64,000 bases of DNA from Heteronotia binoei. Taxonomy: Eukaryota. The translations under genes and the position numbers were made by a program. Numbering within the stretch: position 1 is the first letter of the stretch; each line of letters opens with the position of its first letter. The stretch covers positions 34,100,001 through 34,164,000 of the forward strand of contig NC_083241.1 in assembly GCF_032191835.1 (NCBI RefSeq). The letters run 5' to 3'. Shown here in pieces: positions 9,041 through 21,625 of the stretch. The notes under the pieces were generated by a model. It saw only the letters and a list, made by a program, of their open reading frames with translations, made no database searches and had not been told where the DNA came from.

Positions 9041-10835
9041 TTTTATTTATATCCCGCCCTCCCCGCCGCAGCAGGCTCAGGGCAGCTCACATAAAACATA
9101 AAACAGATGCATAATTACAATATAAAACATATCAATACAATTCATAATATATAATTCATAATAGTTGCTATTTAAAACCATTGTAATTAAAACCATCAAA
9201 GTTAAAAAAATAACATTTACAGGTGCTATGTTCTAGATGTTCTCCTCTTGTAATTTATGATGGCCGTATGTAAAATCCACATTAAGAGAAGGCCAGTCGG
9301 AAAAGGGTAGTCTTGCAGGCCCTACGGAATTGAACAAGACTCCGCAGGACCCGTACTTCATCCGGTAGTTGGTCCCACCAGTGTGGAGCTGCGATCGAAA
9401 AAGCCCTTTCTCTCGTAGTCTTCAATTTGGCCTCCTTCGGCCCGGGGATTGTCGAAAGATTCTGTGCACCTGATCTCAGCACTCTCTGGGGCACATATGG
9501 GAAGAGACGGTCCCTAAGGTAGGCAGGTCCTCGGCCATATAGGGTTTTAAAGGTAATGACCAGCACTTTGTAACCAATCCGGTATACAATTGGCAGCCAG
9601 TGCAGTTCGCGCAGCCCCGGTTGTATGTGCTCCCACCTCGGGAGCCCTAGTAACAGCCTGGCTGCCGCAACAATCAAACTTATATCCCGCCCTCTCCTAA
9701 TGGACTCAAGGCAGCTCACAACAGTTAAAACAACATAAAATTTAAAAACAAGATATAGAATGAAATCATTTCCATACATTTTAAAATCATTCCGTTCAAG
9801 ATGTACATTGATATTCTAATTATCCCAATTTTTTTGGGTTCAGTTTTTACAGTTCAGTGAGATTGCCAGTGCTGTGGCATATAGCCACCTCCCCTTAACT
9901 GCTGAAGGCAAGTTTAAACAATTCGGTCTTACAGGCCCTGCGGAACTGTGGCAGGTCCCTGATGTTTTCGGGGAGGGCATTCCACAGAGCGCAGCTATTA
10001 CTGAGAATGCTCTGGCTCTGGTGATGGGTAATCAAACTTCTCTTGGTCCAGCGATCTTAAGAAGATTTTGGGACCCCGAATGTAGTGCTCTCTGGGGTAC
10101 GTATGGGGAGAGGTGGTCCCAAAGATAGACAGGTCCCAGGCCATATAGGGCTTTATATAGGCACCTTGAAAGGAATCTGGAACGCCACAGGCAGCCAGGG
10201 TAACGTTTCCAGCACAGGTTGAATGTGCTCCCGTATAGCGAGCTCCATTAACAACCTGGCTGACATATTTTGCACTAGCTGCAGCCTCCAAATCTGAGTC
10301 AGGGGCAGCCCCATGTAGAGGGCGTCGGAGTAGTCTATTCTCGAGGTGACCGTCGCATGGATCACTGCTTCTAAGTCACTGCGCTGCAGGTATGCAACCA
10401 ACTGCCTTATCCGCCTGAGATGCTAAAATGAGGATTTGGCAGTGGCTGCTACCGGGGCCTTCATTGTCAGCAAAGGCTCCAGGAGCACCCCATAGCTCTT
10501 AACCTTTGAAGCTGGAGCTAATGGCATCCTATCAAAGGCCGGCAGAGGGATCTCCCTACCCAGCTGCTGCGACTTAGGAACAGGACCTCTGTCTTCACTG
10601 GATTCAGTTTCAGTCGACTCTGAGCCACTTCACTACGGCTTGCAATGCCAGGTCCAGATCTTCCAGGGCGCAGTTGGACTGACCCTCCCATCAATAGATA
10701 GAGCTGGGTGTCATCTGCATACTGGCGACAACCCAGCCCATATCTCTGGACAATCTGGGCAAGAGGGTGAACGTGGATGTTAACATCGGGGAGAGAACCG
10801 CCCCCTGAGGCACACCACCTACAAGTGTGTGCCTC
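9001..10835 (-). mobile_element. L2-clade LINE fragments (RT and C-terminus) with (TAA)n tail
   Basis: YADDTQLYL, VTSRIDY..ALYMGLP...LQLVQN..ARLL and LHWLP...YKVL...RAFS.AAP.WW..LP motifs in broken frames; (TAA)n near 9009-9040. Confidence 0.85.
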
Positions 10836-11154
10836 TGTGACGATTGCTCCCCTATGGCCACTCTTTGTCCCCGACCTTGGAGAAAAGAGGTAAGTCACTG
10901 AAGGGCAGGCCCCTGAATCCCCACGCCGGCATGTGTTTGATAGGTGCTGAAATCTCAAGAGTGCTGTATTTCGAAGTGAGAACCGGCAAGGACTTGTGGG
11001 ATGTATCTCATTTCCCTCTTCCCCACTATATCATTTCCTTTTCCTGAAAGTCCCCATAGCACCTCTTGTTTTCATGCTTCCTTCTCTCCTTCCAACCCTG
11101 CAACCAATCTATATATTTTTTCAAAGATTTCAGGTTTTTACGGCTGGTAACATC

Positions 11155-11388
11155 ATTAGGGTTTGTAGAATCTTTCGGGATCAAGTGCCGTGTTCTACTG
11201 GAGAAAGTTTTCCTTCCAGACGTTTCGTTCTCAGCTGCAAATGCACAGCAGCCAAGAAGGTCAGAGCGCCTTCTCCGGCAGCAACGCCACTGAGGATGTT
11301 CTCCGCAGCTGAGAACGAAACGTCTGGAAGGAAAACTTTCTCCAGGAGAACACGGCACTTGAGCCCGAAAGATTCTACAAACCCTAAT
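11155..11388. mobile_element. PLE-derived inverted-repeat element (84-bp arms, 66-nt spacer)
   Basis: 11155-11238 is the reverse complement of 11305-11388 with 2 mismatches. It contains the hammerhead motif listed next. Confidence 0.75.
11287..11327 (+). ncRNA. Minimal type I hammerhead ribozyme motif (intact core)
   Basis: CCA CTGAGGA T GTTCTC-CGCAGCT-GAGAAC GAAA CGT C TGG. Stem I is CCA/TGG, stem II is 6 bp, stem III is the palindrome ACGU, and the GUC cleavage triplet ends at 11324. Confidence 0.7.
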
Positions 11389-11747
11389 ATATATTTTTTG
11401 TCCGTCTGTCTTCAGATTTCCCTCTCTCCCCCTCCTAGGAAAACTACAGCCCAGTTCTGTGATGCCAGGCACTGAGCCAAGCTAACTTGCATAGTACGGA
11501 GTCCTGAACGACTTTTCCCTCAGCCCCCCTCCACAACTATTTCCTCTTTCCCTCCTGTTGGCAACCCCCAAACCTTCTCCCCTTTCTGCACCTCATTCTT
11601 TCCTCAGCCATTATCAACCCACCTACCTTTTATCCGCTTTCATCGTCAGCAATATTTATTGTTCATTTATTTATACCCTGGCTTACTTCACATTGGGGAC
11701 CAAAGGAATCATTCTCTGGTCCTTTTTAGTCTCACGCCAACCCTGTG

Positions 11748-12256
11748 AACAAAAAACCTCAGCTTGAGACCCTGGAGAGCCGCTGCCAGTCTGAGTAGAC
11801 AATACTGACCTTGATATTGGAGGGACGGTGGCTCAGTGGCAGAGCATCTGCTTGGTAAGATGAAGGTCCCAGGTTCAATCGGCGGCATCTCCATCTAAAA
11901 TGGGTCCAGGCAAGTAGGCGTGAAAAACCTCAGCTTGAGACTCTGGAGAGCCGCTGCCATTCTGAGTAGGCAAGACTGACTTTGATAGACTGAAGGTCTG
12001 ATTCAGAATAAGGTAGCTTCATATGTCCATATGATCTTTAAGGGGAGGGATGGTGGCTCAGTGGTAGAGCATCTGCTTGGTAAGCAGAAGGTCCCAAGTT
12101 CAACCCCCGGCATCTCCAACTCAAAAGGGTCCAGGCAAATAGGTGTGAAAAACCTCAGCTTGAGATCTTGGAGAGCTGCTGCCAGTCTGAGTAGACAATA
12201 CTGGCTTTGATGGACTGAGGGTCTGATTCAGTATAAGGCAGCTTCATATGTTCAAG
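11748..12256 (+). mobile_element. Three tandem tRNA(Ala)-like SINEs with CR1-type tail (one partial, two full)
   Basis: GGTGGCTCAGTGG.AGAGCATCTGCTTGG...GGTTCAA heads with A and B boxes, a shared body, and ...ATAAGG(C/T)AGCTTCATATG tails. Confidence 0.85.
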
Positions 12257-12329: not shown

Positions 12330-12681
12330 CAGTTTTCACTGATTGACAGCCCAGCTGTGAGGGGAGGGGAGGGGAGGACAGAAACGCCGGGCGAAGCTCG
12401 GCCAAAGAACGAGCGAGAGACTGGCAAAAGCCTAGAAGGGCCGTTTCCTGGCAAGACCTCATCCCTTCCCCGTTTCCATAGGAAGAAGAGGGACTGGTTA
12501 GGTGCCTCAGATGGGGAGGGAACCACGAATCAAGCAGCCAATAGGCGCAGCCAATTGAGCATCGAAGGCGGGACTCGGATGGCTTGAGCGATCGCCTGAA
12601 GCTTCGGGCCTCGATTGTGATTGGTGGGCTGGGCAGTGAAGCTCAAGAGAGAGGCGTGGCGTGGCGGGCAGCGGAGGGAGG
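12330..12681 (+). promoter_or_regulatory. FAM219B: FAM219B CpG-rich promoter and 5' UTR with CCAAT boxes
   Basis: CpG-rich. CCAAT at 12538 and 12551, ATTGG at 12620. ATG at 12682 in a strong Kozak context (AGGATGG). Confidence 0.6.
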
Positions 12682-12753
12682 ATGGCGGAGGGCGAGGAGG
12701 GGCCGTCGAGGCGGAGGGAGGCCGGGGCTCCGCCTGGGCCCAGCGGCGACACG
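12682..12753 (+). CDS. FAM219B: FAM219B exon 1 (MAEGEEGPSRRREAGAPPGPSGDT); join 12682-12753,17844-17934,18324-18414,20847-20924,22533-22581,24552-24707 = 537 nt, 178 aa
   Basis: Kozak ATG in a CpG island, donor ACG|GTGAGG, and phase 0 matches the next exon. The peptide itself is poorly conserved, so support is positional. Confidence 0.65.
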
Positions 12754-15700
12754 GTGAGGGGCGAGGCCTCCTGGTCCCCCCAGAGGGGAAGGGGTCAGTG
12801 TGGGTTGGGGGCTGGCCTGGTGGGGAGGAAGGGGGTGGTGATGTGGGGAGGGGTTCTCTGTGGGGTGCGCCAGAAGGATCCCAGCAGGGGGGCAACAGGA
12901 AGCCTCCCCAGGCAGGAATTCAGAGCAGGAGTCGTTCCCCGTGGCAACAGGTAGACTGCCTCTGGATATAGAGGCTCCACTAACCTGCCCTGGTTAATGG
13001 CCTGTATCAGGGGTAGGCAAACGTGCTTAATGCAAGAGCAAAATAGAATAAACGTCTGACGTTTGAGAGCCACAAGGAAGAAAGGAAGGAAATAGGGGGG
13101 AGGAGGTGGAAAGAACGCAACTTTAAATGCATCCCCCAAGCCAGCTAACGGGGCATTGGGAGCTTTGAGAGCAACACAATATGTGTGAAAGAGCCACACG
13201 CGGCTCCTGAGCTGCAGTTTGGCCACCCGTGTCCTAGCATATGTGGCGACAGGCAGGCTGTCGTGGGTAATGGCATGTATCAGGGGTGGCCAAACCTGCC
13301 TAATGTAAGAGCGACGTAGAATAATCGTCAGATGTTTGAGAGCTACAATACAGGAAGGAGGGAAGGCAACTCATGGGGTGGATGGAGAGGTGGAAAGAAA
13401 GCAACTTTAACTTTAAATGCATTCTCCAAGCCAGCTGTTGGGGCTGGGGGAGCTTCGAGAGCCACGTGAGGCTCCTGAGCTGCAGTTTGGCCACCCCTGC
13501 CCTAGCGCGCGCGTGTGTGTGTTGCTGTCAAGCCACAGCCAAGTTGTGTGACCCCTCATGGGGTTTTCAAGTCCCCTTTCCACTCAGCCCACTGCCCTGT
13601 TTCCAGCATTCACAGTTCGATGGTGTGAGCAGTGGGCTGATGGTATCTGTTGCCCCAGTCTTTTGCCATTGTAGTATTTTGGATGCAGTACCTTGGGTTA
13701 TGGCGGATTCACTGAGCAATCGGGGCAAATAGCAAATTGTACTGCCTTTAACCACATAGATTCAGAGTCCTGATTCTCATAATTAACAGCTGGGTGACAG
13801 AAGTTTCTCTAACTCTTTATGATAAAATCAGAGCTGCCCTGCTGGATTGGATTTAGGATTTATATCGCACCCTATACTCTGAATCTCAGAGTGGTCACAC
13901 CCTCCTTTACCTCCCCTGCCCCCCCACAACAGACACCCTGTGAGGTAGGTGGGGCTGAAAGAGCTCTGACAGAAGCTACCCTTTTAAGGACAGCTCTGCG
14001 AGAGCTATGGTTGACCCAAGGCCATTCCAACAGCTGTAAGTGGAGGAGTGGGGAATCAAACTCGGTTCTCCCAGATAAGAGCCCGCACTACAACATACAG
14101 GCTCAGAGCCAATGTCCATTTAACCCAGCATCCTGTTTCCAATGGACGTCAGCTTACTGCTTCTGCAAATTGGCATGGACCATGACAGCCAGGCAGGGGA
14201 GTGATCCTAAGAGCAGAAGACAGGCTCTTTCTTCCACTGTCCTTCAGCAAATACCTTCCCTGTTTGCACCTCCCAACTGGTACATGGCAGCACACTGCTT
14301 CTGAACATGGAGATTCCATTCAGACATCATAGCTGATAGCTTTGGGGAGACCTGTTAGCTGGATGAGTGAAAAGAGTCGGTGAATATCTGGCAGTGAGAG
14401 TGGAGGACCCATGTTTTGTAGCTTTCGAGGACTGCTGTGATAGAAGGGTTTTGGATGGGGGTGGGTGCTGAAGTCTAGGTGTTGTAGGTCAGGGATCCTC
14501 AACCTTTTTGAGCCTCTGGACACCTTTGCATTTCAGATATTTTATTGACGTTTCAGAAATGAAGTTAGGGAGAAGAGAAAGGGACAAAGGGTAAAATAGC
14601 ATCAACGAAATATTTTTTCTAGGGCCCGTTGTATTTCTTCCTACAACAGGCTTTACTGCTAGTCTGACATAAAACACATAATAGTCAAGTCCACGGATTT
14701 TCTTTGTAGCAGGAACTCATTTACATATTAGGCCACACACTCCTGATGTAGTCAATCCTCTTGGAACTTTCACTAGACCCTGACCTAAGAGCCCTGTAAG
14801 CTCTTGGCTCCATCAAGGGTGTGTGTCCTAATATGCAAAGGAGCCCCTGCTAGAATTCTATCTCTGGACTCTGTACTAAGCTCTTGGAGGGTTGGCTCCA
14901 TCAGGGGTGTGTGGCCTAATATGCAAAGGAGCCCCTGCTAGAATTCTATCTTGCCTGCTTCGGCGGGGAGGGCGGGATACAAATAAAATTTGTTGTTGTT
15001 GTTGTATCTCTGGACCCTGTACTAAGAGCCCTGTAAGCTCTTGGAGGACTGGCTCCATCAAGGGTGTGTGTCCTAATATGCAAAGGAGTTCCTGTTACAA
15101 AAAAAGCTCTGATCATCCATACACAAAGAAAAATGTTTCTCTATAAGCATTAAAATACATTGATATTATTAACATGCCAGAATAGCTCATATAAAGCTTT
15201 GAGTTTCATTCCCCTACAGAATTTTTAAATATCCCATGTGAGATTTAAAAAACTGAATTCTGGCACAGGGTGTCGGGCACAGCCAGAAAATGGCTGCTGT
15301 GGGAGTTGGTGCCGCACACCCAGAGGAAGTCCAAGTCTGAGAGAGAAAAGAGGTAATTGAAAATATGCTGGGAAAACAGGGCTGGAGAAAATGAAACAAA
15401 CCCTGTGAGGTCAGCTGTAATTTGAATCTGTAGCTCATCAGAACGTGTGGGGGGGGGGGATCATAAATCCTGCATGAGAGCCTCATCTGGCCCCACCCAA
15501 TTTCTAAAAACAGCTGTGGGCATAAAGAAAGGTATTGGCGGGTGCTATGTTGCCCACTGGCACCACCTTGGGAACCTCTGGCCATTAAGAATGACAGGGC
15601 AGTCAAACTGTGTCCGACAGAAGTGCTCAGAAGTAAAATGTCAGGCAGAAGGCTGGCTCGCCCTGCTGCTACAGCCTGTCTGGCAACTCCTCTTCCTTCC

Positions 15701-21041: not shown

Positions 21042-21625
21042 GGGGCCGTGGTTCAGTGGTAGAGCATCTGCTTGGTATGGAGAAGGTCCCAGGTTCAATC
21101 CCTGAATCTTCAGTTAAAAGGGACCGAGCAGGAGGGGATGTGGAAGATCTCGATCTGGTAGAGCATCTGCTTGGCATGCAGAAGGTCCCAGGTTCAATCC
21201 CTGAATCTTCAGTTAAAAGGGACCGGGCAGGAGGGGATGTGGAAGTTCTTCATCTGGCTCAGCAGTAGAGCATCTGCTTGGCATGCAGAAGGTCCCAGGT
21301 TCAATCCCCAGCATCTCCAGTTAAAAGGGACTGGGCAGGAGGGGATGTGGAAGATCTCGATCCGGTAGAGCATCTGCTTGGCATGCAGAAGGTCCCAAAT
21401 TCAATCCCCTGCATCTCCAGTTAAAAGGGACCGAGCAGGAGGGGATGTGGAAGTTCTTGATCTGGCTCAGCAGTAGAGCATCTGCTCGGCATGCAGAAAT
21501 TCCCAAATTCAATCCCCGGCATTTCCAGTTTAAAAGACCCTGGAGAGCTAATGCCAGTCTGCACAGACAATACTGACTTTGATGGGCCATTGACCTGTTT
21601 TGGTATAAGGCAGCCTCATGTGTTC
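21042..21625 (+). repeat. Tandem array of five tRNA-like SINE heads, the last with a full SINE body
   Basis: GTAGAGCATCTGCT recurs at about 21059, 21158, 21265, 21365 and 21474, each followed by a B-box-like motif. Confidence 0.85.

Follow-up and report, generated by a model that had tools for sequence, protein, structure and literature searches.

The window analysed here, the whole 64,000-nucleotide stretch from the gecko Heteronotia binoei, carries an inverted repeat whose arms (11155–11238 and 11305–11388, 84 nt each, placed by a repeat finder) are complementary at 82 of 84 positions (98%) and lie 66 nt apart. Sequence reading and self-BLAST also revealed a perfect 12-bp direct repeat, TATATATTTTTT, at 11110–11121 and 11388–11399. 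The two copies bracket an insertion of 266 bp (11122–11387/8) as a target-site duplication. A stretch of 33 nt (11122–11154) separates the left arm from the left duplication, and the right side has no counterpart. A sequence-only reading of this DNA had described the inverted repeat, correctly on the count of complementary positions given above; it had missed both the 12-bp duplication and the 33 nt at 11122–11154. From left to right, the locus comprises the following features.

11110–11121, no strand: left target-site duplication, TATATATTTTTT; an exact 12-nt match to 11388–11399, with the loose ends of family reads just before 11122.
11122–11154, minus strand: 33-nt tail, an extra 3' extension of the minus copy only, covering about +94 to +126 of the open reading frame (ORF); its read depth equals that of the arm, and the frame is open.
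11155–11238, minus strand: left arm, a 5'-truncated element end with the 3' half of the hammerhead (antisense on the plus strand) and ORF codons 4–31; from the repeat finder and an in-frame minus-strand translation.
11239–11304, plus strand: spacer without a counterpart in the inverted copy, made of 57 nt of pLTR that precede the ATG and then the 5' half of the hammerhead; marked by the continuation of reads at 11240.
11287–11327, plus strand: minimal type-I hammerhead of the kind found in Penelope-like elements (PLEs), with a predicted cut after C 11324; from the sequence, a descriptor search and alignment to Poseidon_Ac.
11296–11388, plus strand: start of the ORF, its ATG at ribozyme positions A9, extra U and G10.1, with 31 codons to the end of the insertion; from translation.
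11305–11388, plus strand: right arm, the terminal 3' 84 nt of the plus copy, ending CTACAAACCCTAAT; from the repeat finder, with read depth of about 3 or less beyond 11392.
11388–11399, no strand: right target-site duplication, TATATATTTTTT, whose first T is common to the arm (an ambiguity of 1 nt); an exact repeat.

The insertion resolves into two copies of one element end, joined at their truncated 5' ends at 11238–11240. The plus copy (11239–11388, 150 nt) ends at about +93 of the ORF, and the minus copy (11122–11238, 117 nt) ends 33 nt further, at about +126, with the reading frame uninterrupted through the 33-nt tail on translation. The right arm starts inside loop II of the hammerhead, and the antisense arm thus covers the 3' half of the motif only. 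This half includes GAAACGUC, in agreement with what had been claimed from the letters alone. The youth of the insertion, which had been claimed on the same basis, we also judge to be right. Self-BLAST found no second copy of the element in the 64-kb window.

This anatomy is that of a PLE insertion. PLEs usually insert with strong 5' truncation; an inverted 5'-truncated copy often adjoins and gives rise to inverted repeats, and in many cases one end alone carries the tail of 30–40 bp (Craig et al. 2021, PMC8557442). The gecko locus likewise has a 5'-truncated copy next to an inverted 5'-truncated copy, a one-sided tail of 33 nt and a target-site duplication, TATATATTTTTT, that is AT-rich.

A complete hammerhead motif occupies 11287–11327 of the plus copy. 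Stem I has 3 bp (CCA at 11287–89 with UGG at 11325–27). CUGAGGA follows at 11290–96 and then one extra U at 11297. Helix II pairs GUUCUC (11298–303) with GAGAAC (11311–16) over 6 bp with a 7-nt loop, and the motif continues with GAAA (11317–20), CG (11321–22) and U-C (11323–24), cleavage being predicted after 11324. The core boxes CUGANGA, GAAA and UH stand in type-I order, as in the minimal hammerhead ribozymes (min-HHRs), and the unpaired U at 11297, followed by a G (11298) paired with a C (11316), is also a min-HHR trait (PMC4209133). The motif has no loop 3 and carries a palindromic A-C-G-U at 11320–11323, the min-HHR arrangement in which helix III is formable only between two motifs.

We searched both strands of the 64-kb window with a descriptor that called for at least 3 bp in stem I and at least 4 bp in helix II, allowed an extra nucleotide and further required a palindromic 15.2/16.2 followed by U and H. 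It matched once, at 11287–11327, compared with a mean of 0.003 matches in 300 Markov-shuffled windows. The letters and this single match bear out the intact minimal core reported by the sequence-only reading. Its description of the motif as one of the dimer type stands as well, the minimal form being one that would depend on a dimer or a helper. The Rfam hammerhead models (Hammerhead_1, _3, _II, HH9 and HH10) gave no match at E<=10 on 10900–11700, and at gathering score the whole window yielded no hammerhead family; tRNA heads of SINEs were returned. The gecko motif is without the helix III/loop 3 and the loop–loop contacts of the canonical Rfam hammerheads.

The motif sits where PLEs carry their hammerhead, that is, where the pLTR meets the ORF and the start codon falls at stem II. 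The ATG (11296–98) coincides with A9, the extra U and G10.1, and the cut site lies 26 nt after the start codon. Judged by its sequence, the motif is an inherited part of the element, the pLTR/ORF-start hammerhead known for the family. In every family member it spans the boundary between pLTR and ORF and contains the ATG; at this locus the plus copy alone has the length to include the whole motif.

The closest point of comparison is Poseidon_Ac (PAc), a PLE of the Penelope/Poseidon clade in Anolis carolinensis whose Repbase consensus is given in a published supplement (Frangieh et al. 2024, PMC11167929). Positions 11287–11327 align to its hammerhead without gaps, with 29 of 41 nucleotides identical and all core letters the same. 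In stem I and helix II together, 9 of 9 pairs are standard in both gecko and Poseidon_Ac (18 of 18 cells), and 4 of the 9 are changed on both sides. When the 3' partners were slid by 1–3 columns as a control, 33–50% of cells were paired. A conserved RNA structure would be expected to show such compensatory changes; coming from two sequences, they suggest one with modest support.

The biochemistry of PAc is known in some detail (PMC11167929). Its hammerhead was shown to cleave, the C3G and G8C mutants were dead, and the double mutant was partly rescued; without the element's protein there was no cleavage. AT-rich DNA was cut, with a preference for sites with ATT, and both top and bottom strands were extended. 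Reverse transcription began at two neighbouring sites inside the RNA, slightly more than 100 nt into the ORF, and the interval between them is the tail. In Anolis RNA, Frangieh et al. (PMC11167929), like us, saw no read-end sign of cleavage.

The coding sequence says less about the family. The copy retains 31–42 codons of the ORF (codons 1–42; the two copies are 5'-truncated to 150 and 117 nt) and has no reverse transcriptase or GIY-YIG coding sequence, and neither phmmer nor BLASTP linked the family to one. A phmmer search with the 39 codons on the minus strand (11122–11238) against 1.84 billion representatives returned five matches, all of them spurious (PD40-type or other repeat proteins); it was uninformative because the query is too short and the start of the ORF too variable. 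The same 39 codons, compared by BLASTP with residues 1–45 of Poseidon_Ac, gave no alignment, the peptides being too diverged. By eye, ETSG, H-SPKD and P-D are common to both N-terminal peptides; we do not count them as evidence. Because BLASTP found no alignment, the link to Poseidon rests on the 41-nt motif, the ATG register, a few short DNA words and the insertion anatomy.

The extreme end of the copy shows one further peculiarity. If the final T, which also belongs to the duplication, is set aside, the last letters of the plus copy (11383–11388; inversely 11155–11160) are CCCTAA, a single unit of the vertebrate telomere, at what would be the start site of reverse transcription. The counterpart in Poseidon_Ac is ACAACAACCCTG. 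The reverse transcriptases of PLEs are relatives of telomerase; the presence of the hexamer at the copy end may well be chance.

RNA reads provide a view of the family beyond this copy. Contigs from two RNA sets, together with reads from two raw RNA-seq runs (about 6% of either run; species coded), were placed on 10500–11900 at 90% likeness. Depth is in the hundreds over 11111–11392 and 0–3 over the unique flanks at 10923–11110 and 11393–11721. About 80% of the placed reads run on into sequence unlike the window and are therefore derived from other copies. Loose read ends just before 11122 have heterogeneous AT-rich continuations and mark the terminus of the family, followed by differing insertion sites. 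Those just before 11240 continue fairly uniformly (agreement 0.73), into the family's own upstream sequence, which is absent from this copy, and family reads pass 11240 in plus orientation only. The two boundaries, 11121/11122 and 11240, are those predicted from the anatomy of the insertion. With depth confined to 11111–11392 and heterogeneous left flanks, the reads describe a dispersed multi-copy family, as is expected of a PLE. At the two arm mismatches, 11180 (left arm) and 11346 (right arm) each differ from the family majority, and further differences lie at 11139, 11272 and 11280; none of the differences listed falls within 11287–11327.

We conclude, with a probability of about 90%, that the feature is a dead, 5'-truncated Penelope-like insertion of the Penelope/Poseidon clade, with two element ends head to head. 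Its anatomy, the homology of its motif to that of Poseidon_Ac and a multi-copy family with matching boundaries are direct observations. The steps of integration that we propose for the gecko locus are modelled on PAc in vitro. The element's GIY-YIG endonuclease would have cut both strands of the AT-rich target TATATATTTTTT, 12 bp apart, and each free 3' end would then have primed reverse transcription of the element RNA, from a start site at about +93 or about +126 of the ORF. Both cDNAs would have stopped early, at 150 nt and 117 nt, and would have been joined at 11238–11240. The expected outcome is an 84-nt inverted repeat, a one-sided 33-nt tail and a 12-bp target-site duplication. With both strands cut and extended, such a course would leave two 5'-truncated copies head to head and a tail of 30–40 bp at one end only.

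The source may have differed from an autonomous Poseidon. It could have been a non-autonomous PLE derivative, of the non-LTR 'retrozyme' type or SINE-like, that shares only the PLE end. The terminal 150 nt alone are present and the body of the source is not visible, nor did phmmer or BLASTP tie the family to an RT/GIY-YIG ORF. The majority of family reads stop at the tail, where varied AT-rich flanks follow, and thus stem from short dispersed copies; animal retrozymes are reported to be related to PLE pLTRs (Li et al. 2026 preprint, bioRxiv 10.64898/2026.07.22.740005). However, the locus has no tandem array and a single hammerhead, and its ATG and open frame keep the register of the Poseidon_Ac ORF start, with the frame open through the tail. 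We therefore regard a non-autonomous source as unlikely. A non-LTR retrozyme as such was rejected, there being one hammerhead and no direct repeat of a unit.

A working switch is the idea that the sequence-only account had raised. A long plus-strand transcript would form a hairpin, with the ribozyme off and double-stranded RNA produced; a transcript initiated in the spacer, or paired in trans, would self-cleave at 11324/11325 and affect the downstream gene or the production of small RNA. Folding agrees with part of this. The RNA of 11122–11400 is predicted to form a single extended hairpin, which at –174.2 kcal/mol (z = –20.5 relative to shuffled sequences) is very stable. The core is intact, and helix II reaches a probability of about 0.77 in model transcripts that lack the left arm. 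With both arms present, helix II and stem I are both at 0, and the claim that the antisense arm would switch the ribozyme off is thus supported by the model. A GC-rich, promoter-like island also lies 1.3 kb downstream.

The same calculations give little to an active state. The ribozyme-competent secondary structure of 11287–11327 is predicted at –6.5 kcal/mol, of which stem I, with its 3 bp, contributes 0.2 kcal/mol; the probability of stem I is about 0 in every construct, including those that lack the left arm. The 56-nt construct put forward earlier for cleavage assays (11280–11335) folds no better than shuffles. The descriptor found no second hammerhead in the 64-kb window that could serve as a dimer partner, and the inverted copy, cut short within loop II, cannot supply one. 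Even in dimeric form, metazoan min-HHRs show poor cleavage (PMC4209133), and the homologous PAc ribozyme needs the element's protein.

The RNA reads point the same way. Molecule ends at 11325 had been suggested as a sign of cleavage; in the two raw RNA runs none accumulate at 11324/11325, and read starts and ends are in excess nowhere in the stretch, ordinary RNA-seq being a weak cleavage assay. The unique flanks, at a depth of 0–3 against hundreds over the repeat, are weak evidence that the locus is not appreciably transcribed. As PLE integration fully accounts for the arrangement, we consider a switch very improbable: the proposed switch-like function is not borne out, the arrangement being a standard by-product of PLE integration with nearly silent flanks.

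Little more can be said for two related proposals. In one, the hairpin would be transcribed in some tissue as a source of double-stranded RNA (endo-siRNA, piRNA or a substrate of ADAR) against a Penelope family that is still expressed; in the other, the antisense arm would be a built-in off-switch of the hammerhead. Either seems to us a long shot. Nothing suggests an 'on' state or any use of the ribozyme at this locus. We take it that the motif plays no part in anything here, because it has no dimer partner, its 3' half would be held in an 84-bp duplex when both arms are present and the reads show no appreciable transcription.

Two further readings, a DNA transposon (MITE or another kind) whose terminal inverted repeats are long and a local duplication in inverted orientation with hammerhead letters by chance, have almost nothing left to recommend them: the long inverted repeat flanked by a direct repeat is MITE-like at first sight, the Rfam hammerhead models are unmatched and a gigabase genome would hold some chance descriptor matches (extrapolated from the shuffles), but the arms are not flush with the duplication, 33 extra nt lie on one side only, the motif is homologous to a biochemically tested PLE hammerhead in sequence, length and ATG register, with compensatory helix changes, and reads pass 11240 in one orientation only and so reveal a longer linear parent, not a hairpin-shaped unit. 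A duplication of 12 bp is also long for a DNA transposon. A MITE or TIR transposon was rejected on the 33 unpaired nt to the left of the arm, with none on the right. So was a microRNA precursor. Models of mir-8515, mir-542 and mir-1467, together with that of an Enterococcus sRNA, match 11155–11398 with small E-values and far below gathering scores (41.3, 23.3 and 19.3 bits for the three microRNAs, against thresholds of 100, 70 and 90); these matches are no evidence of a microRNA, because any long perfect hairpin yields them.

The surroundings of the insertion hold other repeats. Two tandem copies of a 225-nt tRNA-derived SINE occupy 11819–12251, with a tRNA-Thr-like head at 12046–12118 and further heads at 21141, 33809, 56691 and 56934; it looks like an ordinary abundant SINE. 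RNA depth over 11722–11900 is the highest of 10500–11900, and reads there whose joints go back 142–150 come from tandem copies elsewhere. At 10688–10734, all four RNA runs show very deep coverage with several majority differences, from another expressed repeat family. An island of 71% GC at 12600–12899, about 1.3 kb downstream of the insertion, is consistent with a CpG-island promoter, possibly that of the gene named FAM219B in the sequence-only reading.

The truncated Penelope-like insertion thus belongs to two known kinds, a PLE with a minimal hammerhead and a head-to-head truncated PLE insertion with a tail. Both the motif type and the anatomy of the insertion are already described in the literature, and the locus is ordinary because the motif is inherited, already described and locked shut in this copy. 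As a discovery it carries little weight: PLE hammerheads were described in 2014, the tail and inverted-copy anatomy is textbook, and the Anolis relative has been reconstituted in vitro. It is a clean small example, with a 12-bp duplication, termini 33 nt apart and a head-to-head joint, and it fits the in vitro result that priming by the enzyme takes place on both DNA strands, from two internal start sites. In squamate, amphibian and fish genomes, palindromes with CUGANGA...GAAACGUC are scars of Penelope and call for filtering on that basis.

Of the known systems, Poseidon_Ac is the nearest. Both elements have a 41-nt hammerhead of the same plan (3-bp stem I, CUGAGGA, extra U, 6-bp helix II, 7-nt loop and GAAA-CG-UC), an ATG where stem II starts, and a cut 26 nt after the start codon. 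Both use an AT-rich target and two alternative 3' termini about 30–40 nt apart (the tail), and the priming on both DNA strands seen for Poseidon_Ac would account for the head-to-head copies of the gecko. By eye, CGAAACGTC lies at the same distance from the ATG in the two, followed by AGCCCGAAAGA and an AC-rich ACAA..CCCT stretch. They differ in their helix sequences, with 4 pairs changed on both sides, and in the length of the coding region that separates the cut site from CCCGAAAGA, with 6 nt more in the gecko. Upstream, their pLTR sequences show no relation by eye. Termini in the gecko are placed at about +93 and +126, whereas the main PAc start is at +111–118, and the gecko copy is a 266-bp fragment without reverse transcriptase or endonuclease.

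The min-HHRs of metazoan PLEs occur mostly as single dispersed copies, with some close pairs on opposite strands, and are present in reptiles (Cervera and De la Pena 2014, PMC4209133). The gecko motif resembles them (PMC4209133) in its type-I topology without loop 3, the palindromic ACGU that replaces helix III, the unpaired nucleotide between A9 and G10.1, the G10.1–C11.1 pair, the long helix II and the short helix I. Its stem I has 3 bp, compared with the 4–5 bp typical of the Schistosoma families, and the locus holds one complete motif, the inverted copy being truncated inside loop II; the gecko motif is known from sequence.

Non-LTR retrozymes (Cervera and De la Pena 2020; Li et al. 2026) are likewise hammerhead-bearing, non-coding and related to PLE pLTRs. 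They are, however, tandem head-to-tail repeats that give circular RNAs by means of canonical type-I hammerheads, whereas the gecko locus lacks tandem units and consists of two copies head to head that carry one minimal motif between them.

In L1 twin priming, the segment that is inverted derives from an upstream portion of the same RNA. That process is like the one proposed here in its inverted and 5'-truncated product, the priming by both target strands and the target-site duplication. It differs in that both arms of the gecko insertion are the same 3' terminal segment, which therefore points to two initiations at the element's own start sites.
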